This document shows positions 7,211 through 63,234 of a stretch of DNA of 64,000 nucleotides, piece by piece. A model generated the notes under the pieces. It was not told the DNA's origin. It made no database searches and saw only the letters and a list, made by a program, of their open reading frames with translations. Location: IMG/VR virus record IMGVR_UViG_3300032242_002041, positions 164,287 through 228,286 of that record; one strand, given 5' to 3'. Numbering within the stretch: position 1 is the first letter of the stretch; every line of letters starts with the position of its first letter. Made by a program: the position numbers and the translations under genes.

Positions 7211-7218
7211 TATTTATA
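7211..7218 (-). promoter_or_regulatory. T4-late-like promoter TATAAATA
   Basis: Exact TATAAATA about 9 nt upstream of the GT2 start; motif recurs before many genes. Confidence 0.7.
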
Positions 7219-23717: not shown

Positions 23718-23788
23718 ATTTTTCTCCGTTTATGGCCGGTTAGCCATGATTCATGCTCCTTATGGGAGCGACTCAGTAAATATTTATA
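23718..23788 (-). promoter_or_regulatory. polB TATAAATA promoter and two-hairpin leader (putative translational operator)
   Basis: TATAAATA 23781-23788; GCUCC/GGAGC and AUGGC/GCCAU stems; loop CCG complementary to CGG at the SD. Confidence 0.55.
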
Positions 23789-26943: not shown

Positions 26944-27655
26944 CTTTAATCCAGTCGTCGGGAACTACACCGTGTTTTTCAACAAACAGCTCGTGCAGTT
27001 TTTTTGGAGTAATTTTGTATTTTTTGGCTATAGACTTCATCATGTGATCTATAGCATCGTAGCTGTAGGGATGGCGAAGATCTTTTTCAAGATCATCAAC
27101 ACTGCCTTCTTTTAATGGAATAACCTTGACATCTTTATCATACCGTTTCCAAGGTGTAAAGTTTTTGTTAGTTCTAATCGTATCAAAGTCAGCAACATAT
27201 ACACCGCCTGACTTGTTCCAGTCAGCACCGCCAACAAATTTCATGGACACACGGTCTCCTAACTTGTGCATGTCAGGGATTTGTATAGCCACATTCATAA
27301 CAAAGTTTTTATTGTTAGTTAAATCAGCATAACGGCTAGCTAGTTCGTTAGGAATATCAATAGTAACTGTATAGTTTTGTCGTAAGAAGTGCTGGGCCAA
27401 TTGCCTATATCTCTTTAATACCTGCGCCTGATTACTACTGTGATTTAACGCATAGGTAACTTCTAAATAAATGTGACGGCATTTGAATTGTTCGGCTATA
27501 GATTGAATGGTGTCAATGTCTTTGAACTGGTTGACAATCAAAGTTTTTTTGCCGTAGGCAGCAGTCCTCTCAACTTCAGGACCGATGATATAATCGGGTC
27601 TATTGCCGGTTGGATGCACATTTTTTGTGCTGGTAGTAAAGTCACTGGCTCTCAT
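26930..27655 (-). CDS. putative virion internal protein carrying a paralogue of 16927..17442
   Basis: MRASDF leader; GPEVERTAAYGKKTLIV..HIYL..GVY..FTPWKRYDKD; LKE boundary. Confidence 0.7.
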   Translation of the reverse strand: MRASDFTTSTKNVHPTGNRPDYIIGPEVERTAAYGKKTLIVNQFKDIDTIQSIAEQFKCRHIYLEVTYALNHSSNQAQVLKRYRQLAQHFLRQNYTVTIDIPNELASRYADLTNNKNFVMNVAIQIPDMHKLGDRVSMKFVGGADWNKSGGVYVADFDTIRTNKNFTPWKRYDKDVKVIPLKEGSVDDLEKDLRHPYSYDAIDHMMKSIAKKYKITPKKLHELFVEKHGVVPDDWIKDAHK

Positions 27656-30600
27656 TCAACACCAAGGATCTGTTGAACCTGATTGACATAAGCACTAACA
27701 TCACTGGTGCCAATTTCGTCTACGTCACCTACATTGTATGCCACTTCCTCAATGGCCTGTGTGACTTTATCTAGCCCAAATTCCATTATCAAATCAGTGT
27801 GCGCCACTAGGATACGCCTGATAATGGCGATCTCAACGGCTTCGCTACTGGTTGAATTTTCGTCCTCGACCAAGTCTTGTTCAAGTCGATTGATCAGTTT
27901 GGAAACTGTTGTTTCAAAGGACTGTATGCTGGGTTTACCCAATCGAGCCTGCTCAATGGCAGCTTCTTCGCTATCGCCACGTCGTGTGATGCTGACCATT
28001 CGAGTTTGAGGATTGTAATAGACCACATAGCCGCGGATCACACTTTTCTGTGGAATAGTAGTACCGGGCATTTCAAATTCTTCTGTGACTTTGTCCTCAA
28101 ATGGCAAATACCAGAACCAGTTTTGGAAACCACCTGGGTTGGTATCATAGTCCATATGCGCACGATTACGAGCACCAGCCATCATACGTTTGAACTCATT
28201 TTCTGCGCCATGTAGTTCAGCAATGTTTTCTAGCTCGTCGTACAGTTGACCAGCAAGAAAACTGTCCCTGTGACGTTCAATTTTAGGAGCCAGGCGGCGA
28301 TAAACTCTAGCCATTTCTGCTCGAACATCTGTAACAGTTTCGGCTACGCCTTGCTTGCGCTCGTAGTCACGAATGATGTCAGCCCGCATATTAGGATTAC
28401 GTTCAATAGCCCGTAGCACTGCCTCGGGATAACGTGCAGGTTGTTTTGCTTTAACTGCTATGTGAGCATCTGGCATGTCATTCCATTCACCATCATCATA
28501 ATCATCACTTTCGTTCTTGGGTTTGACATGATGTTTTTTCATGTTGATTGCAATAGCAGCCTGCTGTGCGGCATTGGCGGCTTCCTCAAAGTCATCTCGA
28601 GGATTCATGACAACCGAACGAGATTGAGGTTGATTAACTGATTTTGCTGTCGGAGATTGATTAATGGTTTGAGCTTGTGAGCCGGCCGCATTTCTATGAC
28701 CAATTGCACCAATAATACTATTAACATCATTACTGCCCTGCATACCGGCTGTATTTTGTAATATTTTCCATACCGCTTGTTTATTACTTGCGTTACCTAG
28801 TGCTGACATTAAATCATTTTGATTTTGAATTTTACCAGACTGAATTTGTTGTATAACAGCGGTAGGATTGACTACACTAGGACCACTGCTTTGTGCCTGA
28901 GCCGCACCGGCGCCGCCCAAGGCCATGGCACCTGCTAGGGCTGCACCACCTAATGCTGATTTCCAGCCTTCATCCAGATCAATATCAGCCGGAGCAACCC
29001 ATACTGTATCGTGAGTCCATTTTGTTGGATCTTTCTTGCGCATGGCGGCCACATAGGCTTCAGCTTCTCTAGTATTCATGGGTTTGCCAATCTTATTTGT
29101 GGATTTGATACGCTTGACTTGACCGTTTTGTTTGGTATACACCGCATAGTGGTCACGTAGTCCTGCGGCCCCACTTCCACCCCAATTGCCTTCCTTGACT
29201 GGTGTGTCTTGTTGAGGTGCTGGTTTTAGCAGTGTGCGATACTGTTGTTGAAATGCCGCTTTGCTCATACCATATGCAGTATAAAACTGGCGCTCATTCA
29301 TATGTTCTACGTCTTGACGCATGATATCTATATCACTCAAACTGTCGCTTTCATCTAACTCGTCGTACCAATCATCTTCTTCTTGTTTGTCAGCATACTG
29401 GTTGTATTCAACATCACTCAGGTGCATGCTGTGTTTACCGTGATTGTACAAGTCGACAATAACAAATGTTCCACTTGGACTGAGTTCATAGATCTCGCCA
29501 GTCTTGCCTTCAAATTCGTTGGGTGCTGTAACAATGATAGGATCACCCGGGTGTAATCGGTTAGCAGATTCGTCAATGTTTAATAAATCAAATTCATCTT
29601 CTGGATTAGGAACTGGTAGTGTCTGAGATTTAATCTGAGGAGCGGCAGGCTTGGCCTTAGGTTTAGATTTGGATTTGGAAGGTGCAACATCTAAATCACT
29701 AAACGGAGCCTGCACACGCGGAGTCTGTTGTTTTTTGGTCGTGGTCAAATTATCCTGATCTATGTTTAATGCCTGTGCGGCCTGTGCCGGCAGTGAGTTT
29801 ATTTGAGTTCGTAATTTTGCTATTTCGGCCTTGACATTATCTGATGGTGGCTGTTGTTGTAATTGATTAATTTGCATTTTAAGATCTTGTAGTTCTTTTT
29901 CAACTCCTGGATCTGCACCAGGCGCAATGATTGTTGTGGGCTCTGGGGTTATTGTCTGTGGTGTTGTCTTGGCTGCTTGTTTAGGACGTGTGGACTGTTT
30001 TGCTCCAGTCATTGATTGGATGGTGTTTTGTAAACGATCGTTAGTAGCTTGTATGCGAGCTAACTGAGCTTCAAGACTATTATTTTCAGAATCTAACCCG
30101 TCAATCTCACGCCCTTGCTCTTGGTCAAGTGATACTAATTTTTTTAAGAGTTCGTCTTGTTTAGTGTTAGCACCCTGAATAGCAGCCAACTGTTGATCAC
30201 TACGTTTTTGATGGTCCAATTCATCTTTGGCCAAAGCTGCCATAGCATTAGGAGCTGCAGGGTGCTTGGCTTGTATTTTTCTTACAGCGTTGGTGGTTTC
30301 GGCGTCGCCAAAGTTTGGATCTTCAGAATTTTTTTTTTGAGCTCGTTCTGAGACTGGGCTTATCTTAGGTTCAGCATACCCTGTCAATTTGGGCTGGAAA
30401 GGATCTGCGGGTTGTTTTAACTGTGGACGAGTGGTTACTTTTTTCTGCCCACCTAACCATAAGGCAAAATTATTACGATCAGCTAATGTTTGTAGTGCAA
30501 ATTGATTACGAGTTTGGCGGCTCATATTTTTTAATTTTAATAAAGTATGATATATTTGATTACGTGACATAGTAATTGGTTCAGGACTGTTCATCCAGCG

Positions 30601-31137
30601 GATAGTTGCAATATCAACATTGTCGTCATGTGCTTTACGCATTTGTTCGTAGGCATATTTGGCAGCAGCTACAGGAGAAATTGCGGCTGTTTGTTCTTTA
30701 ACTGTGGACTCGTATGTAGGACCAGTGTCGTCTCGACCTGCTAACCAATCAACAAAACTAGAAAAAGTCGATTTAGCTTTTCCTAACGCAGTATTGCTTG
30801 GAGGAGTAGCACCGGTTACACGTTGTTGCGGAGTAACTAAATCTGTACCAGCACGAACAGGTTGGGCGGGTGCTGGAACTTGGTCAGCTTCACCTAAGCT
30901 ACCATAGCCCATGCACTCATCTTTAATCTTGTAATAGCCGTCGCGCTCAGTTTTGCACTTTTGAAATTCTTTAACCAATGCCGCCTTAGATTCTGGAGTA
31001 GTAGCTGTTTTAGCACGAGCAACCAAGTCATCCATCTTCATAGCTAAATCGTCAATGCGACGTTGTTCTAATTGGTCAACAGCACCTTCTGCAAGGCGTC
31101 GTTCGTGATCTGTGTTAAATAGGTCTAATGCAAACAT
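27652..31137 (-). CDS. large modular putative internal virion polyprotein
   Basis: Many short modules between LxE/VxE/GVAE sites; coiled coil; KOW-like segment; internal hydrophobic helix. Confidence 0.75.
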   Translation of the reverse strand: MFALDLFNTDHERRLAEGAVDQLEQRRIDDLAMKMDDLVARAKTATTPESKAALVKEFQKCKTERDGYYKIKDECMGYGSLGEADQVPAPAQPVRAGTDLVTPQQRVTGATPPSNTALGKAKSTFSSFVDWLAGRDDTGPTYESTVKEQTAAISPVAAAKYAYEQMRKAHDDNVDIATIRWMNSPEPITMSRNQIYHTLLKLKNMSRQTRNQFALQTLADRNNFALWLGGQKKVTTRPQLKQPADPFQPKLTGYAEPKISPVSERAQKKNSEDPNFGDAETTNAVRKIQAKHPAAPNAMAALAKDELDHQKRSDQQLAAIQGANTKQDELLKKLVSLDQEQGREIDGLDSENNSLEAQLARIQATNDRLQNTIQSMTGAKQSTRPKQAAKTTPQTITPEPTTIIAPGADPGVEKELQDLKMQINQLQQQPPSDNVKAEIAKLRTQINSLPAQAAQALNIDQDNLTTTKKQQTPRVQAPFSDLDVAPSKSKSKPKAKPAAPQIKSQTLPVPNPEDEFDLLNIDESANRLHPGDPIIVTAPNEFEGKTGEIYELSPSGTFVIVDLYNHGKHSMHLSDVEYNQYADKQEEDDWYDELDESDSLSDIDIMRQDVEHMNERQFYTAYGMSKAAFQQQYRTLLKPAPQQDTPVKEGNWGGSGAAGLRDHYAVYTKQNGQVKRIKSTNKIGKPMNTREAEAYVAAMRKKDPTKWTHDTVWVAPADIDLDEGWKSALGGAALAGAMALGGAGAAQAQSSGPSVVNPTAVIQQIQSGKIQNQNDLMSALGNASNKQAVWKILQNTAGMQGSNDVNSIIGAIGHRNAAGSQAQTINQSPTAKSVNQPQSRSVVMNPRDDFEEAANAAQQAAIAINMKKHHVKPKNESDDYDDGEWNDMPDAHIAVKAKQPARYPEAVLRAIERNPNMRADIIRDYERKQGVAETVTDVRAEMARVYRRLAPKIERHRDSFLAGQLYDELENIAELHGAENEFKRMMAGARNRAHMDYDTNPGGFQNWFWYLPFEDKVTEEFEMPGTTIPQKSVIRGYVVYYNPQTRMVSITRRGDSEEAAIEQARLGKPSIQSFETTVSKLINRLEQDLVEDENSTSSEAVEIAIIRRILVAHTDLIMEFGLDKVTQAIEEVAYNVGDVDEIGTSDVSAYVNQVQQILGVE

Positions 31138-33654: not shown

Positions 33655-33863
33655 CGAACTTCCTTTACACTGCCAATATGCCAGAGTGGCACACCATACT
33701 GTGCTTGCATTAGTTGACGGGCCAGTTGTGCGTTGGGCGCAGTCACAGTTACATCAATATAGCCTACATAATTAGGTTGAGTAATCTTAACCGGCGCTGT
33801 CCATAGCTTGGCAGCCACGGCTGTGTTTTGTTTTACGGCTTCCGATATTTCGTAGAATCTCAT
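33651..33863 (-). CDS. small putative internal virion protein
   Basis: MRFYEISE leader; ATGA overlap with the upstream stop. Confidence 0.6.
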   Translation of the reverse strand: MRFYEISEAVKQNTAVAAKLWTAPVKITQPNYVGYIDVTVTAPNAQLARQLMQAQYGVPLWHIGSVKEVR

Positions 33864-34693
33864 TGTCCTGTCCACTTGGCTATCATAGTTGCTTGACTGG
33901 TATAAATGCCAGTGCCTCTTCGTCCGCTACGCATACTACTGCTACCAGGTTTTACTGGAAATGTATATCTAGTCCAATCCGCCGTTTGATCAACGACCTG
34001 GTCACCGCGTTGTGGCCGGTATTCATCAGTGGGCGTCATGTTGTAACCTAGGACTTCAACTCCTGGAATACTATTTAACATTAGCCACATCTGTTGTCCG
34101 TGACGGGTTTGTGTTTCGCCAGCTTCTACTGTGAGCTTTAATATGCTTAAGGCAATGCCATACAAGGCTTTGCCAAGCCCCTGTCCACGAAAATCAGGAT
34201 CAACCACTACAGTATCAACTTTCCAAGTTTTCATGTAGTCCTGAGTATAATACAAATCCATTTCGGCAGCTAATATTTGGCCATCAAAGATCATAATTTC
34301 TATATTTTCAGCATCGGGTTGATTAACAGCATAGTCAAACTTACTACCGCCTGGCAGGGGTTTTGTTTTGGGCGGAGTTTTAGGATCGGCCAAGGTGCCT
34401 TTTTTGCCCCAGTCACCTAGTTCACTTTTTGGCAAGCGGGCTATCTCAAATAATTCTGGATCAAAGTCATCAGCACTGATAAAATGTGTAGTGCCATCAC
34501 GATGTTGTAGTTGCACAGCATCATCCTCTGATTCAACTTGATGTATGCTCCAACCAAGACTGTTTAGTACATGTTCAATCTGTGGTTGTCGGTCCGTGGC
34601 GTTCCACCAACGATTGGCCAGAACAAAAATAGGATCTGGAACATCATCATTGTTGTCACGCTCAGGACTGGGAGCAAATTCTCTTAATCTCAT
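33860..34693 (-). CDS. GNAT acetyltransferase-domain protein
   Basis: VVVDPDFRGQGLGKALY acetyl-CoA motif; MRLREF leader; LFE boundary. Confidence 0.8.
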   Translation of the reverse strand: MRLREFAPSPERDNNDDVPDPIFVLANRWWNATDRQPQIEHVLNSLGWSIHQVESEDDAVQLQHRDGTTHFISADDFDPELFEIARLPKSELGDWGKKGTLADPKTPPKTKPLPGGSKFDYAVNQPDAENIEIMIFDGQILAAEMDLYYTQDYMKTWKVDTVVVDPDFRGQGLGKALYGIALSILKLTVEAGETQTRHGQQMWLMLNSIPGVEVLGYNMTPTDEYRPQRGDQVVDQTADWTRYTFPVKPGSSSMRSGRRGTGIYTSQATMIAKWTGQ

Positions 34694-35169: not shown

Positions 35170-36249
35170 TTAGCAGTTCCAACGACGGCGTGCCTTGCAG
35201 ATAGCTTTGTCAGGAGTTTTTGCACAGCTAATATTGTGCATCTTCATTTGACCACGACTGCGTGAGCAGTAGCTCTTGCGACGCTTGCTGGCTTTGCTAC
35301 CTTTTTTGAGCTTGGAAGGTTTAGTAGTCACAGCAGTTTGTAGTTTGCTACCAGGATGCTCACGGCGATATGTTTTGACGGCTTTCTTACTCATGCCATC
35401 TGTGCGGTCTCGATTGTTGACCTTCTGCCAGGCTTCGGTTTCCATAATAGTTGTTGTGGTTGCAAACACATACAGTTCATCATCGTCCAAGCTCTCTAGG
35501 TCTTCCCAGATCACTTCGCTATCTACGCCATTACGCTCAGCAAGAGTTTCAATAATGTTTTCGATTAAGTCAAATTCTTCAGCCAGTTCTGTGTCTTCCG
35601 CCACACCTTGCTGTCTTTGGACAGGGCTGTCTCTAAGTGCATCTCGATAAAACTCTTTGAAATCTTGTGCCAATTCTCTTGCTGACCACGCCCAAGTTTG
35701 ACGGTCCCAATCGTCTGTCATCTCAGCTTCAAGTTTAGCACCTGGTGCTCGACCACGACTAAACCCTATACGAACAGTATGTTCAATTTGTTTATTAACC
35801 AACTTTGCAAATAGTTTGCCATTGGGATTTGGATTAATTGTTACTTTATATCCGTGTCGTTCGGCAAACTGTATCGTTGGCTGTAAGAACTGGATTTTAG
35901 GATCAACAACACCAGCTTGAGGCGGAACAGCTTCCGCCACACTCTCGTTAGGCACACAGTTACGCACCTGGCCGCCATTCCGGCCTTTCTTTGTACCTTC
36001 GGCATGTTTGCCAGGCCAGCAACGAGTATAGCCATTGGCATCTTTAGCACCCTTCTTGATTTCATTGAGATTGCCATGTGTTTGACACATGCCACAGTCT
36101 TCACAGACCATTTCCATTTCTGTGCTTTCATTGTGCTTTTTCTTACCAGCACAATGAGCTCGTTGCGAGAAGCCCTTGGGGTGGCTACAGTTGATACTGC
36201 TCTTGTATTTTTGACTCCACTTTTCAGTGATAAATTCATAGGCTTTCAT
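35170..36249 (-). CDS. putative internal virion polyprotein of basic Cys-containing peptides
   Basis: MKAYEFITE leader; Lys/Cys-rich modules between xxE sites. Confidence 0.75.
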   Translation of the reverse strand: MKAYEFITEKWSQKYKSSINCSHPKGFSQRAHCAGKKKHNESTEMEMVCEDCGMCQTHGNLNEIKKGAKDANGYTRCWPGKHAEGTKKGRNGGQVRNCVPNESVAEAVPPQAGVVDPKIQFLQPTIQFAERHGYKVTINPNPNGKLFAKLVNKQIEHTVRIGFSRGRAPGAKLEAEMTDDWDRQTWAWSARELAQDFKEFYRDALRDSPVQRQQGVAEDTELAEEFDLIENIIETLAERNGVDSEVIWEDLESLDDDELYVFATTTTIMETEAWQKVNNRDRTDGMSKKAVKTYRREHPGSKLQTAVTTKPSKLKKGSKASKRRKSYCSRSRGQMKMHNISCAKTPDKAICKARRRWNC

Positions 36250-39200
36250 TCTTTGTGTTTCCTTTTCTGTCCTCTACGCATATTTAACTGCCAACGTGCC
36301 AGTTGTCCTTTACGACCTTTGGCATGACTCGCTTTTTCTAATTCAGCCATTGTAGCACCTTTGGGGATGCCGTGACGAACGCTATCGCCTGGACGACCAG
36401 GTCCTTTGCCGTCGGCAAAATTTTCTTGTAATCCTCTGACTGACATATTGTGTCCAGTGCTACGTTCTAGTTCGTTGGCACGAGCATCAGCCTGCGACCA
36501 AGGCACGTTATCCATTCTGCTGATCTCGCGTCCTAAGGTAACATCGTATATTGCCCAAGTGCCTACTCTATTGGTAGCATCCGCGGGTTGGTCAAAGTTC
36601 TGTGCCACATCTGGCTCAACATCCTTGACTGCTGTTTCTTGCTTGCGTGGTCTATAACCATAGTCGTGAGTGTCGTTTGGCAAACCCTTCATTGTCAGCC
36701 ATTTATCAAACGTTGCATCTGCTTCTTGTTTGTCAGCGGCATAGAACCGGTCCACTACACGTAGATTTACATCGCCAAGATTTACAATTTCGTAGTTGTA
36801 GTCTGTGGGCTTTTTGGTTTGAGTAATGCGCTTGGCTAACTTGGCACGTGGTGTCATAGTTGCTGGATCTTCCCAAGGGCGAACCTGGAAGCCAATGCCT
36901 TGATCCACATACTTGTCGTAGACCTGATCAGCCACTTCGCCTTTGCTCTTGCCCTTGACTATTTCCAGCGTCTTGCCAGTGTTGACATCATACACTTCCC
37001 AGTCTTGCTCACCCATGTTGACCAGCTGATATTCACCAGAGTCCAAGGCTTCACGACCATACTTGGCCCATACTCGGTTTTTAACTTCACTTTCGGGGTA
37101 ACCATTCCACTCGGCACCAGGAACTGGTTCCCACCGACCGTTGACGTTTTGATACAGTCTAAAACGCTGATTCATTTTCTTTTCTTTACCGATGGTCTTT
37201 TCGGCCCATTGTTTCTTGAGTTGTTCTGCGGTGAGTTCACCCGCGGCATATTGACTGAACAGAGCTAGTTCACTGTCGCCTTCGGGCGCTACTAACTTGT
37301 ACAACTTCTTGGCATACTCTCTGCGTTCTTCAGCAGGGTTAGCCGCCAAACTCATAGCACGGGCAAAACGCAACATGGTTGTTTGTAATTTTTCCGGATC
37401 AGCTGACTCTTCTGCTAACCAATCACCACCTGGCGATCTAAATTCAATATAGCCTTTTTGTATGTGGGCACTGGTGTACTTGCCATCGCCTACCCCTTTT
37501 TGTATTTCTTTGTGTGCTAGTTCAATCAAGCCACTCTGCATGAGTTTGATCGCACCCATAGGATCAGCACGACCGCCTTTGATGTTTTCACGGAACTTGC
37601 TCATGGCACTCTTGGTGTAGGTATTGGCTTCGCGACCAAATGACCGTAACACATACTCGTCACCCAAGAACAGGATTAATTTCAAGTAGTCAACATCGCC
37701 ACCTTTGAATGGCACACTAACGCCCATGTGCAGGCCAGTTGAGCTGTTGGTATAGGCATTACCTTCTTGAGGATTATTGGCCCAGTCACATACTTGTTGT
37801 AGTTTTTCTAATGCTGTCAACAGGGGCATAGGAGGACTTACAATTTCCAACCCAAAATCTTCACGATCATCGGGTTCTAAACTGGTATCAGGTTCTACAA
37901 TAAACTGTCCTTCTCGGCGAGTAGCTTGGTGATAACCGCTACTTACTTTAACCGGCATGTCAACGGCACTGTTCAAACTGTCACCAATTTCATCCCAATC
38001 ACGACTTCCGTCATTGCCACCGCCACCGGTCATGTAAGGCCAGTCTAAGTCATATGAATTGGCCACATCACTCATCCAGCGTAGACCCACATCATCAAAG
38101 AATCCTGAATCGTCATCAATTTGATAATTGTCGCGGAAATCATCCAGTGCGGCATCCCAGTTGGCACCTTCCTTACGTACTTCATCTGCTATTAAATCAT
38201 CCAACAAGCCTTCGGCTTCGTTTTGTGCATCCAGGTATTTGTCGTAAAGTGGGTTGGCTTCAGCATACAAGATCTGTTCTTTACTGCTTGTGAACTTAGG
38301 TGCCCGTTCGCCCGCTTGTATAATGTCATTCATTTCATCGTCGGTTAAATCCAACAACTCCAACTGTTTTTGTATTTCGTTGTCAAGATCCCAATCGCCT
38401 TCATCTACTAGAACTTTACGAATCAAGTCCTCGGCTTCTTCTCTAAAGTCTTTGTGCATTTGCTCGTCATACCACTCATAATACTGTTCGTCAAGTCCTT
38501 CTTGTAAGGCACGCTCTTGTCTAGGACTTAAATTTCCGTAGTCGCCACCACTAAAAAAGTCTATGATATCTTGGATGCTACGACAACGTTCGTCCTGATC
38601 ATAGTCAGGTTCCATTTCGTAGTCACTGTCGCCGTTGTTGCTGGTGTCACGGAAGATTAACTCTGCTTCAAACCCAGCACGTATACCCTGGGCTTCTGGA
38701 CTCCGTGCCCACTGCATTAGATTGCTTGGACTCATACGTACTTCGTCTAGTTGCTCAACTGATTCGGCTACCTTTGTTTTTTTGAACTGTGATAATTCTA
38801 AGGCTAATTTTTCAAACAGGCCATTAGGATTAGCAATCTGCGGTTGTCCTTGACTGTTGGTTTTTAATTTTAATTTGTTAGCTTCTTTGCCAACTTGACC
38901 TGGCTTGATATCTTGTGTAAGCGCCATTGAATAGCGTGGATCTCGGGCCTGTTTCCGTGTAGGGATGTATCCCGATGCTGACTCCTCTACACCTTGCTTG
39001 GCACGTTGCTTGGCACGTTTGGCACGTTGTAAGTAGTATTTTTTTAATTCTAAATCTTTTGGTGTAGCAGTTCTGATCAGATCTAAATGTTGATCCACTG
39101 GAACTTTTTCAACTTCTATTGGTTTAAGTTCGGTTACGCTGGGCACGGAAGTAAACTCTCTGTCATTGCCGCCGGGCTCAAACAAAGGACGACCATTGGC

Positions 39201-40652
39201 ATCATACCTTGGTAACTTGTGTAGGTAAACCATTTGACCGTGTCTAATTTTGCCGCTGAATAAAACCAATTGCGGATCATTGGGAAATCCAGCAGTATCA
39301 GACCCTCGTTCTGTAAGGCCCATTGCTATAGCAAAATTTTTGTCGGCTGTGGCATAAATGGCTTTTTTATTACTCTTAGGATTGCCGCCGGTGTCTTCTG
39401 CCTGTTGTGGCGTCAGTACTGGAATCTCGTTTCTAGATCCGTGCCATAGATATTCTTGTGACGCACTTTCTTTAACTTCATCAGCGTGTAAGCCTTGGGC
39501 TTGCCCTACAGCAAAGTAGTCCGGGTGTAGTCTAGCATAGTCGCGCATTAAGATACCAGCACGGGCATTGGCTTCATTTTCCCATGGTGATCCTGTTTCT
39601 CCAGCTGTTGGTCCCATACGTTGACCATCGCGTTCGTGTTGATGCTTGTGTGTAAGTTCGTGTGCCACAGTGCGCAACACATCCATGATGTGACGATGGC
39701 CCCAGGCTACTTCAAGCAAGTGTTGATTGTTGATGTAACGGCCAAAAGTTTTGTTACGCACAGACCATTCAGGATCTTTGCGTAATTTAATTGTGGGCAT
39801 CTGCTTGAGTTTTAATTCTTTAAAACAAAAGTCAATAAAATCTTTTAGTATCTCTTCGTCTGAGGGAACAGGGTCTGGTTCCGTTACGGCTTCAACTATC
39901 TCTGGAGTTCGAAATCCATACTTTACAGGAGTCTTAACTACAGTTTTTTCTTTTAAACTGAGTTCCTGATCTTTGGCTGCGTTACGAGCATCATATAATT
40001 CTTTAATCTTGCCTTGACTACGTAACATTTTAAATGCCAAATTTTCTGGTCCAAATTCGCCGTGTTGTTCAAGTCCAGTTTGGCGCATCTTTTTAATCTT
40101 TTCAGCCATACAGGTCATCTGTTTTAAGTTGCCTGATTTGATAGCACGTTCAATTTGGTGCCCTACTGACTCAAATTTGTTTCGAGTGCTGGTATCGTCT
40201 ACCACTGACTTGACACGACGCGGAACTTGAATCCAGTCATTGTTTAAGATACTGTAAATGCCTTGACTAATATGCGGAGCATCGGCATCTTGAACATATA
40301 GTTCAACATCGTATCCACCAATTGTAATATTGTGTTGTTCGTTATACTGAAACTTTTTAGCATCAAACAGTTCACGATAAACTTCGTTATCGGGCATTTT
40401 AACTACTAGGTGTAGATCGATGTCTGAATTGGGTGTGTATGTGTAAGCGGCATTGCTACCACTAATAGTTATGTCTTTGAGGTCAAGGTCTGTAACGCCC
40501 AGAAACTCGCGAAAATCTTCAGCTATTAACAATAGCTGTGCTTTAACTTCTGGCTTTAAATGCTCAGTAGAATCCCATAATCTAGGATTTAATCGATTAT
40601 TAAATTTGACGGCATCGTCAAGGTTATAGGCGTCTAATTCAAGAATATTCAT
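36246..40652 (-). CDS. multi-enzyme polyprotein: Pol-beta nucleotidyltransferase + HExxH metallopeptidase + ADP-ribosyltransferase-like + amidoligase
   Basis: GSNAAY..SDIDLH; AHELTH..WENEA; WHGS..IYAT..E; GFEAE..DTSL..EIVSP..TGLHM..IEFR; start 40652 just after TAAATA. Confidence 0.8.
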   Translation of the reverse strand: MNILELDAYNLDDAVKFNNRLNPRLWDSTEHLKPEVKAQLLLIAEDFREFLGVTDLDLKDITISGSNAAYTYTPNSDIDLHLVVKMPDNEVYRELFDAKKFQYNEQHNITIGGYDVELYVQDADAPHISQGIYSILNNDWIQVPRRVKSVVDDTSTRNKFESVGHQIERAIKSGNLKQMTCMAEKIKKMRQTGLEQHGEFGPENLAFKMLRSQGKIKELYDARNAAKDQELSLKEKTVVKTPVKYGFRTPEIVEAVTEPDPVPSDEEILKDFIDFCFKELKLKQMPTIKLRKDPEWSVRNKTFGRYINNQHLLEVAWGHRHIMDVLRTVAHELTHKHQHERDGQRMGPTAGETGSPWENEANARAGILMRDYARLHPDYFAVGQAQGLHADEVKESASQEYLWHGSRNEIPVLTPQQAEDTGGNPKSNKKAIYATADKNFAIAMGLTERGSDTAGFPNDPQLVLFSGKIRHGQMVYLHKLPRYDANGRPLFEPGGNDREFTSVPSVTELKPIEVEKVPVDQHLDLIRTATPKDLELKKYYLQRAKRAKQRAKQGVEESASGYIPTRKQARDPRYSMALTQDIKPGQVGKEANKLKLKTNSQGQPQIANPNGLFEKLALELSQFKKTKVAESVEQLDEVRMSPSNLMQWARSPEAQGIRAGFEAELIFRDTSNNGDSDYEMEPDYDQDERCRSIQDIIDFFSGGDYGNLSPRQERALQEGLDEQYYEWYDEQMHKDFREEAEDLIRKVLVDEGDWDLDNEIQKQLELLDLTDDEMNDIIQAGERAPKFTSSKEQILYAEANPLYDKYLDAQNEAEGLLDDLIADEVRKEGANWDAALDDFRDNYQIDDDSGFFDDVGLRWMSDVANSYDLDWPYMTGGGGNDGSRDWDEIGDSLNSAVDMPVKVSSGYHQATRREGQFIVEPDTSLEPDDREDFGLEIVSPPMPLLTALEKLQQVCDWANNPQEGNAYTNSSTGLHMGVSVPFKGGDVDYLKLILFLGDEYVLRSFGREANTYTKSAMSKFRENIKGGRADPMGAIKLMQSGLIELAHKEIQKGVGDGKYTSAHIQKGYIEFRSPGGDWLAEESADPEKLQTTMLRFARAMSLAANPAEERREYAKKLYKLVAPEGDSELALFSQYAAGELTAEQLKKQWAEKTIGKEKKMNQRFRLYQNVNGRWEPVPGAEWNGYPESEVKNRVWAKYGREALDSGEYQLVNMGEQDWEVYDVNTGKTLEIVKGKSKGEVADQVYDKYVDQGIGFQVRPWEDPATMTPRAKLAKRITQTKKPTDYNYEIVNLGDVNLRVVDRFYAADKQEADATFDKWLTMKGLPNDTHDYGYRPRKQETAVKDVEPDVAQNFDQPADATNRVGTWAIYDVTLGREISRMDNVPWSQADARANELERSTGHNMSVRGLQENFADGKGPGRPGDSVRHGIPKGATMAELEKASHAKGRKGQLARWQLNMRRGQKRKHKE

Positions 40653-40669
40653 GATAGTATTTACCGGGC

Positions 40670-40696
40670 AAACAAAAGCCGCTTTGATAGCGGCTT
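40670..40696 (-). terminator. rho-independent terminator
   Basis: AAGCCGCT/AGCGGCTT stem followed by a U-rich tract on the minus strand. Confidence 0.7.
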
Positions 40697-40718
40697 GTGT
40701 CATTTAAACAAAAACAGT

Positions 40719-41671: not shown

Positions 41672-42484
41672 TTATTTTTTCCTAGGCCTACATTCGTCAA
41701 TATAGTCTTGACTGTCACGTAAAATTTGAATTTGTTCTCGCAGATATTGGATATTTTTTTGTAATTTTGCCATACGATTTTCGCGCATAACTGTCACAGG
41801 TTGATCACCGGCAAATACCTTTTCCTGCCCATAAATTACAGCATCTTGAGGCTCATTAACACCCAAACGTTGATCAAAAATATCTTTTAATTCTGGATCT
41901 GGAGCACCATACAAATCAGTAATGATTTGATTACGATCGTTTTCATTGCCATCAACATACATTTTTCTCACAGTGCTGGCAGAATCTGCATCTTGACCCA
42001 GGACTTTAAATGGAATAGTATCCACAACATCTACATAGGCTGTGCCATCGGAAATAGGCTTGCAATCTTTTAAATTTTTAGGCAGGGGTTGTGGGTTAGC
42101 TGGACTTCCGTCCCGCTTGGGAGCAAAGCTAAATCTAGGACGTTGAATAACTTTGCCATCAGCATCTTTAATTAACTGTTGATCTTTTGCTCCCACAGCA
42201 AAAATTAATACAGTATTTTCTGGATCTGGAATATTGGTATATTCTGTAATATGATAAGGATTAACTACTTTGACAATGTCGCTGGCCGGAACGCCCATTT
42301 TGGTTAACATGGTAACTTTGTCACTGTAGCTAAATGGACTGCTTGCTCCGTCTTGTTTTTCAGTTGTAGCAATTTTGACACGCCCGCCCAGTGGAGTGTA
42401 TTTCTTGACAAGATAGTCATAAACACCTTTATGACCTCGGTGGAATAGATGGAATCTGCCTGGATATATTACAAGATAGTTCAT
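41672..42484 (-). CDS. cytidylyltransferase/HxGH nucleotidyltransferase-like protein
   Basis: PGRFHLFHRGH, SPF, SASTVR. Confidence 0.7.
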   Translation of the reverse strand: MNYLVIYPGRFHLFHRGHKGVYDYLVKKYTPLGGRVKIATTEKQDGASSPFSYSDKVTMLTKMGVPASDIVKVVNPYHITEYTNIPDPENTVLIFAVGAKDQQLIKDADGKVIQRPRFSFAPKRDGSPANPQPLPKNLKDCKPISDGTAYVDVVDTIPFKVLGQDADSASTVRKMYVDGNENDRNQIITDLYGAPDPELKDIFDQRLGVNEPQDAVIYGQEKVFAGDQPVTVMRENRMAKLQKNIQYLREQIQILRDSQDYIDECRPRKK

Positions 42485-43468: not shown

Positions 43469-44179
43469 TTATTTAGTCGGGATTATCTGCATAGTTTTTC
43501 TTATAAGGCCAGGGCGAACTAAACCGAGCATGGTTAACCACAGCATTTCGTTGTGATCAACAAAAAAGTAATCTTGGGTCCTATTAAACGGCCCTACTAT
43601 CCATGCGTTGAGCGCAGGGCTTACCCTAACAGTCTGTTGATTTAATAAAAATCCCGTTAGATGAGTCTTTTGTTCCGCGGTCAATTTGACTATTTTAAAA
43701 TAACTACGAAATTGGTGTTGAGGGTTTTTTAGTTGTATAGTATTTGGAGGACGATTAATATCTGCTCGACTGTAACTGTTACTTTCTACTCCATTGAGTT
43801 GATCTACCCGATCAATTAAAGTTAAATCGTTGGTGTAAAGGTATCCTTGGTTGGCACTTACTACTAGTTTAAAATCTACAGGTGCAGTTAACAACAGCGT
43901 TGCCAAGGTGTGTAAGTTATCAACCGTTTGGTCGGTAATTTCTTTTCTTCGCTGTCCTAGTATATGTTGACGGCCTAATACTTGTCCGGTCTTGTGCCAT
44001 CGTTGCATGGCTATGCTACGCCACTCTCGGCGACGTTCAATCGTTCGATCAATTTCGTCATGACCAAGGTCGCGCAAAGCACTGGCTTCATCCATTGTGA
44101 AACTTAGCACGTATTCAAATCGATTATGAAACAATCGATCTTTGACAACCGATTTAAATTGTTGGATCGCTTTGGTCAA
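43469..44179 (-). CDS. hypothetical protein
   Basis: 236-aa ORF downstream of clpA. Confidence 0.7.
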   Translation of the reverse strand: MTKAIQQFKSVVKDRLFHNRFEYVLSFTMDEASALRDLGHDEIDRTIERRREWRSIAMQRWHKTGQVLGRQHILGQRRKEITDQTVDNLHTLATLLLTAPVDFKLVVSANQGYLYTNDLTLIDRVDQLNGVESNSYSRADINRPPNTIQLKNPQHQFRSYFKIVKLTAEQKTHLTGFLLNQQTVRVSPALNAWIVGPFNRTQDYFFVDHNEMLWLTMLGLVRPGLIRKTMQIIPTK

Positions 44180-46430
44180 GAACTATATATCCATTTTCAT
44201 CGACTACAGGAGCCAGCATAGGAGGCTCGATTATAAAATCAATTCGATCATCAACCATGATAGCTGAAATATTGCAGTTTTCTAATCGATCAAACAAGAT
44301 CTTCTTACTCAACGGCACACGAATTAACTCGTCAATCTTACGACCTAAGGGACGAGCACCCATCTTATTGTCATAGCCCTTATCGGCTAACATATCAATA
44401 ACAGATTCCGTTAAGTTTAGCTTAATGTTCTTGTTCATTAGGCTATCTTTAAGTTCATCTACAAATTTAACAACAACTTTCTTGATAGCCAAGGTATCTA
44501 ACTTGTTAAACTTGCACACACAGTCGATACGATTGCGTAGCTCAGGCTTGAAGAACTCTTTCATGGCTTTGTCTTCACTACCGGTCTTTTCTAATGCCTG
44601 ACCGAAGCCAATGTTGTTTGACTCGTTATCACGAGCACCCAAGTTTGATGTCATGATAATGATGCAGTTCTTAAGATCTACTGTTTTACCATTGCTCGAT
44701 GTAATACGAGCTTCGTCTAACATTTGTAACATAATGTTAACAACGTCGGGGTGAGCCTTTTCAATTTCGTCAAACAACAAGATACTAAATGGATTCTTAC
44801 TAACATCACTAATTAACTTGCCGCCGCCTAGGTTACCATCTTCAAAGCCTACGTAGCCTGGAGGCGCACCAATCAAGCCCGAAACTGTATGACGTTCTTG
44901 ATACTCACTCATATCGTATTTTAACAACTTCATATCTAAGTGTTCGCCTAGCAACTTGGCTAGTTCTGTTTTGCCTGTGCCTGTTGGTCCAAGGAATAAA
45001 AAGCTGGCAATAGGACGTTTGTTGTTGCCAATGCCGGAGAAATTAATGTAGACACGTTCTAAGACACGATCTACAGCCGCATCTTGTCCGTAGAGCTTTT
45101 GTTTGATGTTACTTTCCAGTTCAACAATCTTGGTTGAACGTTCGTTTTCAAGTCGATCTAAGGGAACATCAGTTACCCGACTTAGTTGTTCCATAATCAT
45201 TTCTTTGGTAATGGTTACATTGCCCAAGTCCTTGACACGTTCCTTAGCACAAGCACCGTCCAACAGATCAATTGACTTGTCTGGATTCTTACGATCATGA
45301 ATGTAACGGCCACTTAATTCAACTGCGGCTGTAATAGCATCAGTATCAATCATGACATTATGAAACTGTTCCAAACGTGGGCTAAGTCCAATAAGAATCT
45401 GTTCTGTTGTTTCTGCATTGGGCTCATCGATGCTCACACGATGGAAGCGACGCATTAAGGCGCGGTCTTTTTCAAACGACTCGTAGTATTCTTCCCAAGT
45501 AGTACTAGCAATTACTTTTAAACTGCCCTTGGTAATACTTGGCTTTAACATGTTGGCCATGTCCAAGCTACTTTGACTGCTGGCACCAGCACCTTTCATG
45601 GTATGCGCTTCATCAACAAACAAGATACAATTCTTTTTAGTTTCTAGAGCAGTAATAACTGCTTTGAACTTTTCTTCAAACTCACCGCGATACTTTGATC
45701 CAGCTAGTAATGAGCCCACTTCCAATGACCATAGTTCGTGTCCTTTAAGGAATTCTGGTACATGACCAGCGGTCATTTCCTGTGCTAGTCCTTCTACAAT
45801 AGCAGTCTTGCCTACACCGGGGTCGCCAACCATTAACACGTTGGCCTTGAACTTGCGAGCCAACACAGTAATCATTTCATCGAGCTCTGCACTACGGCCA
45901 ATCATGGGTTCAAGACGATCTTCACGGGCTAGCTTGGTAAGCTCAACACAGTGTTCTGTTAATATTTCTGTGGCCTGTTGATCCGTGAGCTTGACATCAC
46001 TTTGTTTGTAATGAGCGTTGTAAAATTCTACAAATTCAGTTTTCTTCATACCATACTTGAGTAGGAAGTAATGAGCGTGACTGTTGTTCTCAGCCATCAT
46101 GGCCAAGTATAAATCTACAGTACTAATAGTTCTGCGACCAGTAAACAAGACCTGAGTCAGTGCGCGATTAAACACACGTTCTAGAGCATTGGTTTTTTTA
46201 GGTTGCACATCTTTGTCAGTGACTAGTGCTGCCAAATTATTTAGATAGGTGTTTAATTCCATATCTAGCAAATTTACGTCAACACCAAATTTTTCCATGA
46301 CACGATGAAAAGGTTCGTGTCTAATTAGGCTCAATAGTACATGTTCAGTTAATACGTATTCGTGATGGCGATCACGTGCTAATTTAACTGCACCGTCAAC
46401 TATTTGTTCAATTTCTGGATTATTTTGCAT
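44154..46430 (-). CDS. clpA: ATP-dependent Clp protease ATP-binding subunit
   Basis: Clp N-domain, GDPGVGKT and GPTGTGKT Walker A motifs, no M-domain, IGF loop. Confidence 0.92.
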   Translation of the reverse strand: MQNNPEIEQIVDGAVKLARDRHHEYVLTEHVLLSLIRHEPFHRVMEKFGVDVNLLDMELNTYLNNLAALVTDKDVQPKKTNALERVFNRALTQVLFTGRRTISTVDLYLAMMAENNSHAHYFLLKYGMKKTEFVEFYNAHYKQSDVKLTDQQATEILTEHCVELTKLAREDRLEPMIGRSAELDEMITVLARKFKANVLMVGDPGVGKTAIVEGLAQEMTAGHVPEFLKGHELWSLEVGSLLAGSKYRGEFEEKFKAVITALETKKNCILFVDEAHTMKGAGASSQSSLDMANMLKPSITKGSLKVIASTTWEEYYESFEKDRALMRRFHRVSIDEPNAETTEQILIGLSPRLEQFHNVMIDTDAITAAVELSGRYIHDRKNPDKSIDLLDGACAKERVKDLGNVTITKEMIMEQLSRVTDVPLDRLENERSTKIVELESNIKQKLYGQDAAVDRVLERVYINFSGIGNNKRPIASFLFLGPTGTGKTELAKLLGEHLDMKLLKYDMSEYQERHTVSGLIGAPPGYVGFEDGNLGGGKLISDVSKNPFSILLFDEIEKAHPDVVNIMLQMLDEARITSSNGKTVDLKNCIIIMTSNLGARDNESNNIGFGQALEKTGSEDKAMKEFFKPELRNRIDCVCKFNKLDTLAIKKVVVKFVDELKDSLMNKNIKLNLTESVIDMLADKGYDNKMGARPLGRKIDELIRVPLSKKILFDRLENCNISAIMVDDRIDFIIEPPMLAPVVDENGYIVLDQSDPTI

Positions 46431-46464
46431 GAATACCTTTTTATGTAAATGTGGCCTATGCTAC

Positions 46465-46493
46465 ATTATACTATATAGTGAATTAAAAATCAA
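46465..46493 (-). promoter_or_regulatory. sigma70-like promoter of clpA
   Basis: TTGATT-17-TATAAT. Confidence 0.6.
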
Positions 46494-46506
46494 TCTATAT
46501 GGATAG

Positions 46507-47298
46507 TTATTGATTACGGGTTTGAGCAATAGCATCCACTACGGATTCTGGAATATTTTCGGGTATTTGTGCCTGAATCCGTACAAACAAATCGCCAGCT
46601 GGCCCGGATCTTTGTCTAAGTCCCCGTTCGCGTAGTCTAAACATAGTTCCTGGTTGAGTTCGGGGTGGTACAGTTACACTCAGGGTGTTGCCCAAGATAT
46701 CACGAACTGGGATTTCCGCTCCCAAAATCAAATCCCAGACGCTAACGGCTTCTTCTGCAATTAAGTTAGCACCTTGTCGCTCCCAACGAGGATTAGGATG
46801 TATTCTAAAAGTAATCAACAAGTCCATGCCCATGGGTCCTGTTTTGGGATACTGTACTGTGTCGCCGTCGTTGATGTTTAGGGGTATTTCTATTTCTACA
46901 GTAACATTGCCTTGATGCGAACCCACGCTGATGGTTTTTCTTCCACCCTCGGCTACATCTTGTAAGGTTATCCATAGGCTCATGCGGGCCTGTTGTGTAC
47001 GTTGTTGATGTGGATGATGAAATTGTGCTCCAAACGCATTGAATATGTTTTCAAAATCAAACGATCCGCCATTGGTTCTAAAACTAAACCCGTGTTGCCC
47101 AAATGGATTAGGATTATCGTGTTGGGCACGTTGTTGTGGATCGCTTAAGGTGCGATATGCCTGTTCTATTTCTTGGAATTTGTTTTTGTCGCCGCCTTTA
47201 TCAGGGTGATGCTGACTGGCCAATCGACGATAAGCTCGTTTGATTTCTTCAGAGGAAGCGGTTTGATTAACGCCTAGTGTTTGATATGGATTTTGCAT
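46507..47298 (-). CDS. dnaJ: DnaJ/CbpA-like co-chaperone
   Basis: J-domain with HPD, G/F region, C-terminal domain, no Zn finger. Confidence 0.88.
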   Translation of the reverse strand: MQNPYQTLGVNQTASSEEIKRAYRRLASQHHPDKGGDKNKFQEIEQAYRTLSDPQQRAQHDNPNPFGQHGFSFRTNGGSFDFENIFNAFGAQFHHPHQQRTQQARMSLWITLQDVAEGGRKTISVGSHQGNVTVEIEIPLNINDGDTVQYPKTGPMGMDLLITFRIHPNPRWERQGANLIAEEAVSVWDLILGAEIPVRDILGNTLSVTVPPRTQPGTMFRLRERGLRQRSGPAGDLFVRIQAQIPENIPESVVDAIAQTRNQ

Positions 47299-47303
47299 AA
47301 AAT

Positions 47304-47338
47304 AAAAAAGCAGACAGCATAGTAATTATACTGTCTGC
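47304..47338 (-). terminator. putative terminator hairpin
   Basis: GCAGACAG/CTGTCTGC inverted repeat followed by a U-tract on the minus strand. Confidence 0.55.
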
Positions 47339-47353
47339 CAAGGGCGATGCGAA

Positions 47354-63165: not shown

Positions 63166-63234
63166 AGGTATTCCTAGGTTATATGATGTATTTATACTGG
63201 ATTATTCTAACTGGGTAAATCTTATTATTGTGGA

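Follow-up and report, generated by a model that had tools for sequence, protein, structure and literature searches.

A predicted effector polyprotein with exchangeable cassettes and conserved h-x-E junctions in freshwater T4-related jumbo phages

Why should a phage join four unrelated enzymes in one reading frame, and what becomes of the product? The question is raised by a minus-strand gene (36246..40652) in a 64-kb stretch of DNA, hereafter the window, which is part of a 345-kb freshwater metagenomic contig (IMG/VR record IMGVR_UViG_3300032242_002041) and has a GC content of about 42%. The DNA polymerase encoded in the window is nearest to those of Sinorhizobium phage Phosso (50%) and Agrobacterium phage Atu_ph07 (46%), and sequence relationships place the genome carrying the gene among the T4-related jumbo phages of freshwater, in "group 2.2" (Atu_ph07/Rak2-like). 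We lean, with modest confidence, to the view that its product is a polyvalent effector polyprotein, which would be loaded into the prohead, cut at its junctions by a gp21-type protease and injected together with the DNA, a view built on conserved sequence features and on the analogy with T4.

A constant scaffold with three cassette slots

The minus-strand open reading frame (ORF) 36246..40703 has 1485 codons and no internal stop. Residue numbers are counted here from its upstream ATG at 40703, which is spurious. The true start is at 40652, at Met18 (1468 aa plus stop), because the equivalent Met is the first residue of more than 100 homologues and because the false 17-codon 5' extension, which directly follows the stop codon of the preceding gene, holds the terminator-like hairpin of that gene (40676..40696, minus strand; a GC-rich stem of 8 bp and then a T-run). 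An initial annotation, made from the sequence and its ORFs, had already chosen this start; its length of 1469 aa counted the stop codon. All features of the gene given below lie on the minus strand.

The first module (residues 18-250; 39954..40652) is a Pol-beta-type nucleotidyltransferase (NTase). It scores 22.7 bits with Pfam NTP_transf_2, above the cut-off of 21, matches PHROG 36119 with E=1.6e-40, and carries the superfamily signature hG[GS]-x(9-13)-D-x-[DE] plus the third acidic residue; G82-S83, D94-x-D96 and E134 are invariant across the homologues. Stand-alone homologues are found in Maribacter phages, T4-like cyanophages and Lak megaphages. After a variable linker (residues 251-282; 39858..39953) comes a compact HExxH zincin resembling ImmA/IrrE (M78) proteins (residues 283-404; 39492..39857; H348, E349, H352, Q355, E375, E377). 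In the family as well as in stand-alone relatives of 112-142 aa, including those of jumbo cyanophages B3, B23 and S-SRM01, H348-E-L-T-H352, Q355 and E375 never vary and E377 hardly does. Eighteen of 30 zincin relatives match Peptidase_M78 (best E=4e-4, mostly under the Pfam cut-off) and others match further zincin families; since the query itself falls below the M78 cut-off, we assign it to the superfamily and not to the M78 family. The ten best PDB matches of its AlphaFold2 (AF2) model (predicted local distance difference test, pLDDT, 79.9) are all IrrE-type proteins or minigluzincins, with prob 0.72-0.99 and E of only 0.02-0.08; in Foldseek, IrrE 3dti reached prob 0.98 and the minigluzincins 0.97-0.99, with E of only 0.02-0.07. 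The zincin profile searched against PDB sequences gave a single marginal match to a neutral metalloprotease.

The next module (residues 413-574; 38982..39467; flanks EVKE412|SAS and GVEE574|SAS) has the H-Y-E residues of ADP-ribosyltransferases (ARTs) at H421, Y450 and E516 and is related to DUF6886. An exhaustive HMMER search yielded 145 representative relatives, among them stand-alone proteins of 140-190 aa. In their alignment H421 (L-W-H-G-S) and Y450 (I-Y-A-T) do not vary, and the position of E516 is taken by Glu or Gln. Pfam DUF6886, a family that carries no functional annotation, is matched by 20 of 39 relatives, and single relatives match Arr-ms at 0.049 and ART-PolyVal at E=0.068. In the AF2 model (pLDDT 92.6) the triad occupies the strand positions expected of an H-Y-[EDQ] ART, with 29 residues from H to Y. 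Among PDB structures the model comes nearest to two rifampin ADP-ribosyltransferases, Arr and Arr-2, and PARP2 stands sixth, but all these matches are weak (E 0.07-0.4; TM-score 0.25-0.39); Arr itself gave E 0.07, prob 0.69 and TM 0.34-0.39, and no structural match in the PDB was significant. Against viral models the significant matches were unnamed proteins, and the profile search of PDB sequences returned nothing useful. Because the structural support for the fold is weak we call the module ART-like; from its sequence and model it is probably, but not certainly, an ART.

The ART-like module is followed by a small basic one, named "GYIPT" here (residues 575-647; 38763..38981; 73 aa, 8.1 kDa, isoelectric point (pI) 10.0), which ends in K-V-A-E647|S. 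Then comes a glutamine synthetase (GS)-like amidoligase of the Amidoligase_2 type (residues 648-1185; 37149..38762). It opens with a leader-like L652-D-E654|V-R-M and GFEAE (677-681), continues with an acidic insert (about 690-925) containing 65 D+E against 19 K+R, and has its core motifs at EPDxS 937-941, GLExxSPP 951-957, TGLH 989-992, R1024, YIEFR 1085-1089 and GGD 1092-1094. These motifs are invariant in 120 family members and kept in two cultured phages. With Amidoligase_2 (PF12224; cut-off 22) the segment alone scores 23.1 bits and its stand-alone relatives 30-34 bits. Those relatives have the whole layout, and the acidic insert is an ancestral trait of the phage amidoligase and is not specific to the fusion. 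The chemistry ascribed to this family here follows its Pfam description. A region of small modules follows (residues 1186-1427; 36423..37148), with two repeats of about 40 aa (1233-1268 and 1377-1416; W-x-[IV]-Y-D-V-x-x-G...), and ends in G-L-Q-E1427. The 120 homologues hold 321 copies of the repeat, with varying copy number and inserts. Four tandem copies had been suspected by eye in the present protein; BLAST self-comparison did not support them and an iterated profile confirmed only two. No family or structural lead was obtained for the repeat, and the ESM Atlas gave none for the C-terminal region. The protein closes with a constant basic tail after L-Q-E1427 (residues 1428-1485; 36249..36422; 58 residues, NFADGKGPGRPGDS..., 6.4 kDa, pI 11.4), about 85% identical across homologues. 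The tail had no tblastn match in cultured phages, and neither it nor the GYIPT module has a further copy within the window.

The layout of four modules put forward in the initial annotation was therefore correct: NTase, HExxH metallopeptidase, H-G-S/Y-A-T/E ART-like domain and amidoligase with a large acidic insert all lie where it had placed them, with catalytic motifs conserved in all four, and the basic peptide after LQE is present as well. Three of the fold assignments are well supported; the ART-like one fared least well, its motif being conserved and its fold only moderately supported. The GYIPT module, the C-terminal repeats, the large cassette family and the junction motif described below had not been mentioned.

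Searches gave 1519 homologues, all metagenomic among the candidates scored. The same module order recurs in more than 100 independent contigs of many samples, and a chance product or an assembly chimera is thereby ruled out. A megablast search of the phages in GenBank with the gene gave no match. Comparison of 119 homologues separates a constant scaffold from variable slots. The constant blocks (query residues 18-405, 572-642, 645 to about 1430, and 1428-1485) correspond to the NTase and zincin, the GYIPT module, the amidoligase with the small C-terminal modules, and the basic tail. Between them lie slots A (residues about 405-572), B (642-645) and C (about 1427), which take at least eight types of cassette. 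Slot A is empty in about 45 homologues and ART-like in a dozen; in the rest it holds Sigma-70 region 4, DUF6934, unknown domains or signal-peptide units of about 100 aa. Slots B and C contain DUF6886-type, ParB_N, DUF3553 and unknown modules, and in homologue P0021 the ART-like cassette is located in slot B. A contig from another freshwater sample lacks exactly 38982-39498 and has 31 nt instead, encoding the cassette-less junction ..N-L-H-A-D-E-V-K-E; in another contig residues 1294-1443 or so are replaced by 651 nt of differing sequence; and read depth is minimal over the ART cassette in four of four runs. The ART module is a swappable cassette, dispensable in natural alleles.

Two slot-A contents of the relatives deserve a word of their own. 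The commonest cassette (equivalent to about 38982-39490 of the window) is of a lipoprotein type, ..NLKGSAVAALSACIIGGGSLSG-C-ATQ, and others have signal peptides of the A-x-A type; units of these kinds occur in P0029, P0076, P0066, P0009, P0099, P0111, P0118 and further homologues. Sigma-70 region 4 cassettes (E ~1e-15) occur in P0018, P0047, P0074 and others, and their sequence hints at a direct interference with the host RNA polymerase or with sigma-factor partners.

Conserved junctions and the fate of the polyprotein

We then looked at the residues that separate the modules. Before the tail the last residue (P1) is Glu in 102 of 102 homologues and P3 is Leu, Val, Met or Ile in 99 of them, while P2, P4 and P5 vary; these P1 and P3 residues are contributed by unrelated upstream cassettes. 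Before the GYIPT module P1 is Glu in at least 111 of 120 homologues and is followed by [SG]-A-S. Slot-A cassettes of whatever type start after [LVI]-x-E, two such sites, V-A-E|S and L-D-E|V, stand ahead of the amidoligase, the hypervariable linker between NTase and zincin almost always contains [IVL]-x-E (here E-I-V-E271|A), and the N-terminus of the polyprotein reads M-N-I-x-E|L-D. T4 gp21 cuts head proteins after L/I-x-E, and the junction positions carry this motif as defined for gp21 (PMC9026906).

Could these junctions be something other than cleavage sites? The polyprotein might work as an uncleaved multi-enzyme machine, packaged or not, in which they serve as flexible linkers or as patches of homology for recombination. 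A short direct repeat, E-S-A-S, does stand on both sides of the ART cassette, cassette-bearing and cassette-less alleles coexist, and a polyvalent protein of the N4 virion RNA polymerase (vRNAP) type is packaged unprocessed (PMC5512222). However, before the tail P3 and P1 are kept on the variable side, in unrelated cassettes, while P2, P4 and P5 drift; a recognition site fits this pattern and a recombination patch does not. The contents of slot A argue in the same direction. In homologues these cassettes often open with a signal peptide directly behind the Glu, either of the lipoprotein kind, with n-region, hydrophobic core and L-S-G-C, or of the A-x-A type, and P0118 has two such units in tandem, each with its own h-x-E in front. 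Inside a protein of 1500 residues such a signal peptide is difficult to account for unless the part upstream of it is removed. With the leaders of stand-alone relatives, which end in the same motif (see below), these observations make an uncleaved protein quite unlikely.

T4 internal proteins are targeted to the head by a 10-residue capsid targeting sequence (CTS) that ends in a gp21 site (PMC9026906), and stand-alone relatives of the modules offer a parallel. Zincin and ART-like relatives have either a leader of 9-17 aa ending in [LIVMF]-x-E (for example MKVKEILNE, MNYKQFLRE, MRFRQFLQE, MVTFKQFFLE and MKLILETWRKYLAE) or none at all (MKPKYLYHG...). The two classes were found among the ART-like proteins P0127, P0195, P0227-P0233, P0241 and P0247 and the zincins P0274-P0281 and cyanophage B23 gp332 (L001:3974-4348). 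Judged from these sequences, this suggests packaged and non-packaged versions of one domain. Stand-alone copies of single modules are also present in T4-like cyanophages of freshwater.

The amidoligase gives the link to a virion. Two cultured jumbo phages encode it as a stand-alone protein of about 500 aa, RsoM2USA_26 and Atu_ph07 AUZ94978.1, with a common layout: leader, G-F-E-x-E, acidic insert, E-P-D-x-S, G-x-E-x-V-S-P, T-G-x-H, Arg, and Y-I-E-F-R..G-G-D. Their leaders, MKLIQKLSE|LKM and MRWQDISSKKLTE|LKM, align with Q-L-D-E654|V-R-M of the fusion and share L-x-E-h-[KR]-M; that of gp196 ends in L-T-E13, before L14. AUZ94978.1 is gp196 of the Atu_ph07 virion proteome, because the portal gp198 (AUZ94980), the gp21 homologue gp204 (AUZ94986) and the major capsid protein (MCP) gp215 (AUZ94997) fix the numbering; its computed mass of 57.93 kDa compares with 57.94 kDa in Table S5 of that study. 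In the published proteome gp196 was detected in virions by mass spectrometry with 14 unique peptides (30.2% coverage), and its gene (L006:5930-7432, minus strand) lies two genes from that of the portal, near that of the gp21 homologue. One module of the fusion is thus, in a cultured relative, a virion protein encoded in the head module and bearing the same leader. The virion study of RsoM2USA identified only ten abundant bands and does not mention ORF26. As to its migration, gp196 was most abundant in gel band 2, beside proteins of 77-137 kDa, and was also present in the lowest band, 13; this anomalous behaviour may result from the acidic insert, from a covalent adduct or from processing.

The gp196 gene belongs to the head module, and the protein runs much higher in the gel than its mass would predict; this could also be taken to mean that the enzymes act on the phage itself during assembly, for instance the amidoligase or NTase on head proteins or DNA, with virion association as a by-product; ATP, nucleoside triphosphates (NTP) and NAD+ are, moreover, present in the producing cell and not in the capsid. 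Yet the hypervariable cassettes, among them Sigma70 region 4, a ParB-like nuclease and secreted lipoproteins, point to a host-directed conflict rather than to a conserved assembly step, and natural alleles can do without the ART cassette. We consider an action on the phage itself very unlikely.

The effector polyprotein that we favour would work in three steps. The precursor would be made during morphogenesis and built into the prohead core. A gp21-type prohead protease, cutting after the Glu of h-x-E, would then split it at the conserved junctions into an NTase of about 29 kDa, a zincin of about 16 kDa, an ART-like protein of about 18 kDa, a basic peptide of about 8 kDa, the acidic amidoligase with the small C-terminal modules (about 89 kDa) and a basic tail of about 6 kDa. 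The pieces would finally enter the next host with the DNA, where the enzymes would modify host or defence components, or cleave them, with the NTP, NAD+ and ATP of the cytoplasm, and the cassette slots would supply a variable arsenal. Packaging, cleavage, the protease responsible and the substrates are inferred in this scheme, and the four host-directed chemistries are predicted from family membership only. Release of the modules by the head protease had been proposed in the initial annotation; the junction Glu and h-x-E, the CTS-like leaders and the presence of gp196 in virions make it plausible, and the window offers no prohead protease or head gene to set beside it.

More tentatively, and with somewhat less than even confidence, we suggest that the prohead-protease site doubles as punctuation in freshwater T4-related jumbo phages, the junction codons being both cleavage sites and points of cassette exchange. 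A small gene placed between two h-x-E sites would then be packaged, released and injected automatically, and the cargo would include the NTase, zincin, ART and amidoligase enzymes, sigma-factor fragments and pre-lipoproteins secreted by the new host. Such a system would correspond, in phages, to the polymorphic toxin loci, and would offer a general way to load capsids with arbitrary cargo.

Gene neighbourhood and the case against packaging

Several observations weigh against a packaged and protease-cut polyprotein. The 64-kb window contains no gp21, portal, MCP or other head gene or prohead protease, and no head gene was found within +/-10 kb in the related locus L002. The T4 alt and ip genes likewise lie outside the main head-gene cluster. 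The polyprotein gene is surrounded, in the window as in L002, by ClpA-like, DnaJ-like, cytidylyltransferase-like, GNAT-like and DUF6321 genes, a setting of chaperones and replication, and no T4-type late promoter was seen near the polyprotein gene. At the junctions themselves, P3 before the GYIPT module is Gln, Thr or Gly in about a quarter of the homologues, and [LIVM]-x-E occurs 25 times in the whole protein; the motif being so frequent, only its conservation in otherwise unconserved junctions is informative, and not its presence. The stand-alone NTase relatives (S-CRM01 g125, Molly_26) have no convincing leader. In cultured phages tblastn found single modules only and no fusion, and gp196 is only 30% identical, so that the virion evidence concerns a distant homologue of one module. 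Lastly, the zincin built into the scaffold could itself do the cutting.

This last point leads to a different fate for the protein, in which it would not be packaged and would be cut by its own zincin at the E| junctions, releasing the effectors in the producing cell. The HExxH domain is conserved, apparently active by its sequence, and part of the constant scaffold, and the same role was proposed for the metallopeptidases (MPTases) of polyvalent proteins, as a model of autoproteolysis, by Iyer et al. 2017 (PMC5512222). The non-structural neighbourhood, the terminator of its own upstream of the gene and the lack of a visible late promoter would also agree with it. But a specificity for Glu at P1 and a hydrophobic residue at P3 is documented for gp21-type prohead proteases and is not known to occur among M78 enzymes. 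Relatives in which the amidoligase or the ART-like domain stands alone retain the h-x-E leader without a linked zincin, Atu_ph07 gp196 is present in the virion, and the same junction motif bounds the zincin itself, as though it were cargo. We therefore regard self-cleavage without packaging as unlikely and keep to the prohead-loaded precursor as the preferred reading.

The expression signals and the genes around the polyprotein are described here for completeness. Three copies of the T4 late-promoter consensus TATAAATA are present in the window (7211-7218, 23781-23788 and 63189-63196, minus strand), a number not above chance; all three are intergenic and just upstream of minus-strand genes, one of which is the DNA polymerase gene. 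Sigma-70 and terminator scans gave background levels. Downstream, a gene of 359 aa (35170-36249, minus strand) starts in the polyprotein stop codon, with an ATGA overlap. The last 80 residues or so of its product match Pfam DUF6321 (E=3.3e-8), and V-A-E motifs are present; the counterpart in L002 has 609 aa. DUF6321 is a basic, Cys-containing C-terminal module that ends unrelated proteins of eight PHROGs and is found in T4-like cyanophages and pelagiphages. From its sequence, the 359-aa protein looks like a second protein with a variable body and a constant basic end. Upstream lie adjacent ClpA/ClpB-like AAA+ and DnaJ-like genes (44154-47298, minus strand), a pair also found in Atu_ph07 (gp292/gp293), and a strong terminator-like hairpin at 47309-47339. 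A GNAT-like acetyltransferase ORF (33860-34693, minus strand; Acetyltransf_1, 1.4e-4) and a cytidylyltransferase-like ORF (41672-42484, minus strand; weak Pfam and PHROG matches) may be further modifying enzymes of the same transcription unit. A 1161-aa ORF (27652-31137, minus strand) had no PHROG or Pfam match.

Relation to known systems

If the effector polyprotein is packaged and cut as we propose, large phages would diversify the proteins that they inject ahead of gene expression through a single scaffold gene, the slot boundaries being read by the capsid maturation protease. The GS-like amidoligase and the DUF6886-type ART-like domain would join the candidate injected effectors, and DUF6886 would gain a testable function. 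The comparison also ties a very abundant and entirely uncultured freshwater family of more than 1500 clusters to gp196 of Atu_ph07, a cultured model that lends itself to the study of packaging, and suggests a simple rule for the engineered delivery of cargo by T4-like phages, namely a leader or junction ending in h-x-E.

The closest published concept is that of the polyvalent proteins of phages and conjugative elements (Iyer, Burroughs, Anand, de Souza and Aravind 2017; PMC5512222); in a later view of these authors, ARTs are often packaged in heads. The initial annotation had placed the protein in this frame, rightly so, given its several unrelated domains and the combinatorial architectures of its relatives. 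The two share the fusion of unrelated effectors (peptidase, ART, Pol-beta NTase), mix-and-match architectures and a predicted use in early invasion. They differ in that the present protein lacks MuF, portal, ArdC-N, SNF2 and methylase modules and matches none of the PolyVal Pfam models (MPTase-PolyVal, ART-PolyVal and others) significantly. It has instead a GS-like amidoligase, which is mentioned nowhere in PMC5512222, a scaffold that is fixed and interrupted by three defined slots, and a prohead-protease-type motif with Glu at P1 at every junction, not an internal MPTase alone.

In T4, Alt is a packaged ART trimmed at both ends, and the set of cargo varies among T4 relatives (PMC9026906). The internal proteins (IPs) IPI-III and Alt are host-directed proteins, including an ART, that are loaded into the prohead and trimmed after L/I-x-E, as we propose for the present case; the cargo is hypervariable in both, and the leaders of the stand-alone modules are CTS-like. 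The T4 cargos, in contrast, are separate small genes, each with its own CTS, whereas at least seven cargos, in the most-loaded case, would here share one frame with sites between them. No sequence similarity of the polyprotein to Alt or the IPs was found. In T4 IPIII a change of the P1 Glu to Asp blocks cleavage.

Atu_ph07 gp196 and RsoM2USA_26 agree with the amidoligase of the fusion in leader, GFExE strand, acidic insert and core motifs, with about 30-34% identity over the core, and gp196 is virion-associated. Unlike the fusion they are single-module proteins of about 500 aa, and the gp196 gene stands beside the portal gene while that of the window stands in a chaperone/replication region. 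Among the phiKZ-like phages and SPN3US, many head-internal ejection or inner-body proteins are cut after Glu by a gp21-like protease and ejected into the host; these phages are of another lineage, with another short motif ending in Glu, without cassette-bearing multi-enzyme fusions and without detected homology to the present protein.

The papers searched contain no mention of DUF6886 and no description of this architecture. Through its strict junction motif, its plug-in slots and its tie to a cultured phage, the family opens the long-standing idea of injected hypervariable head cargo to direct test. Altogether, the family is a variant of the theme of polyvalent proteins and T4 internal proteins, in which the scaffold, the slots, the junction motif and the amidoligase are the new features.

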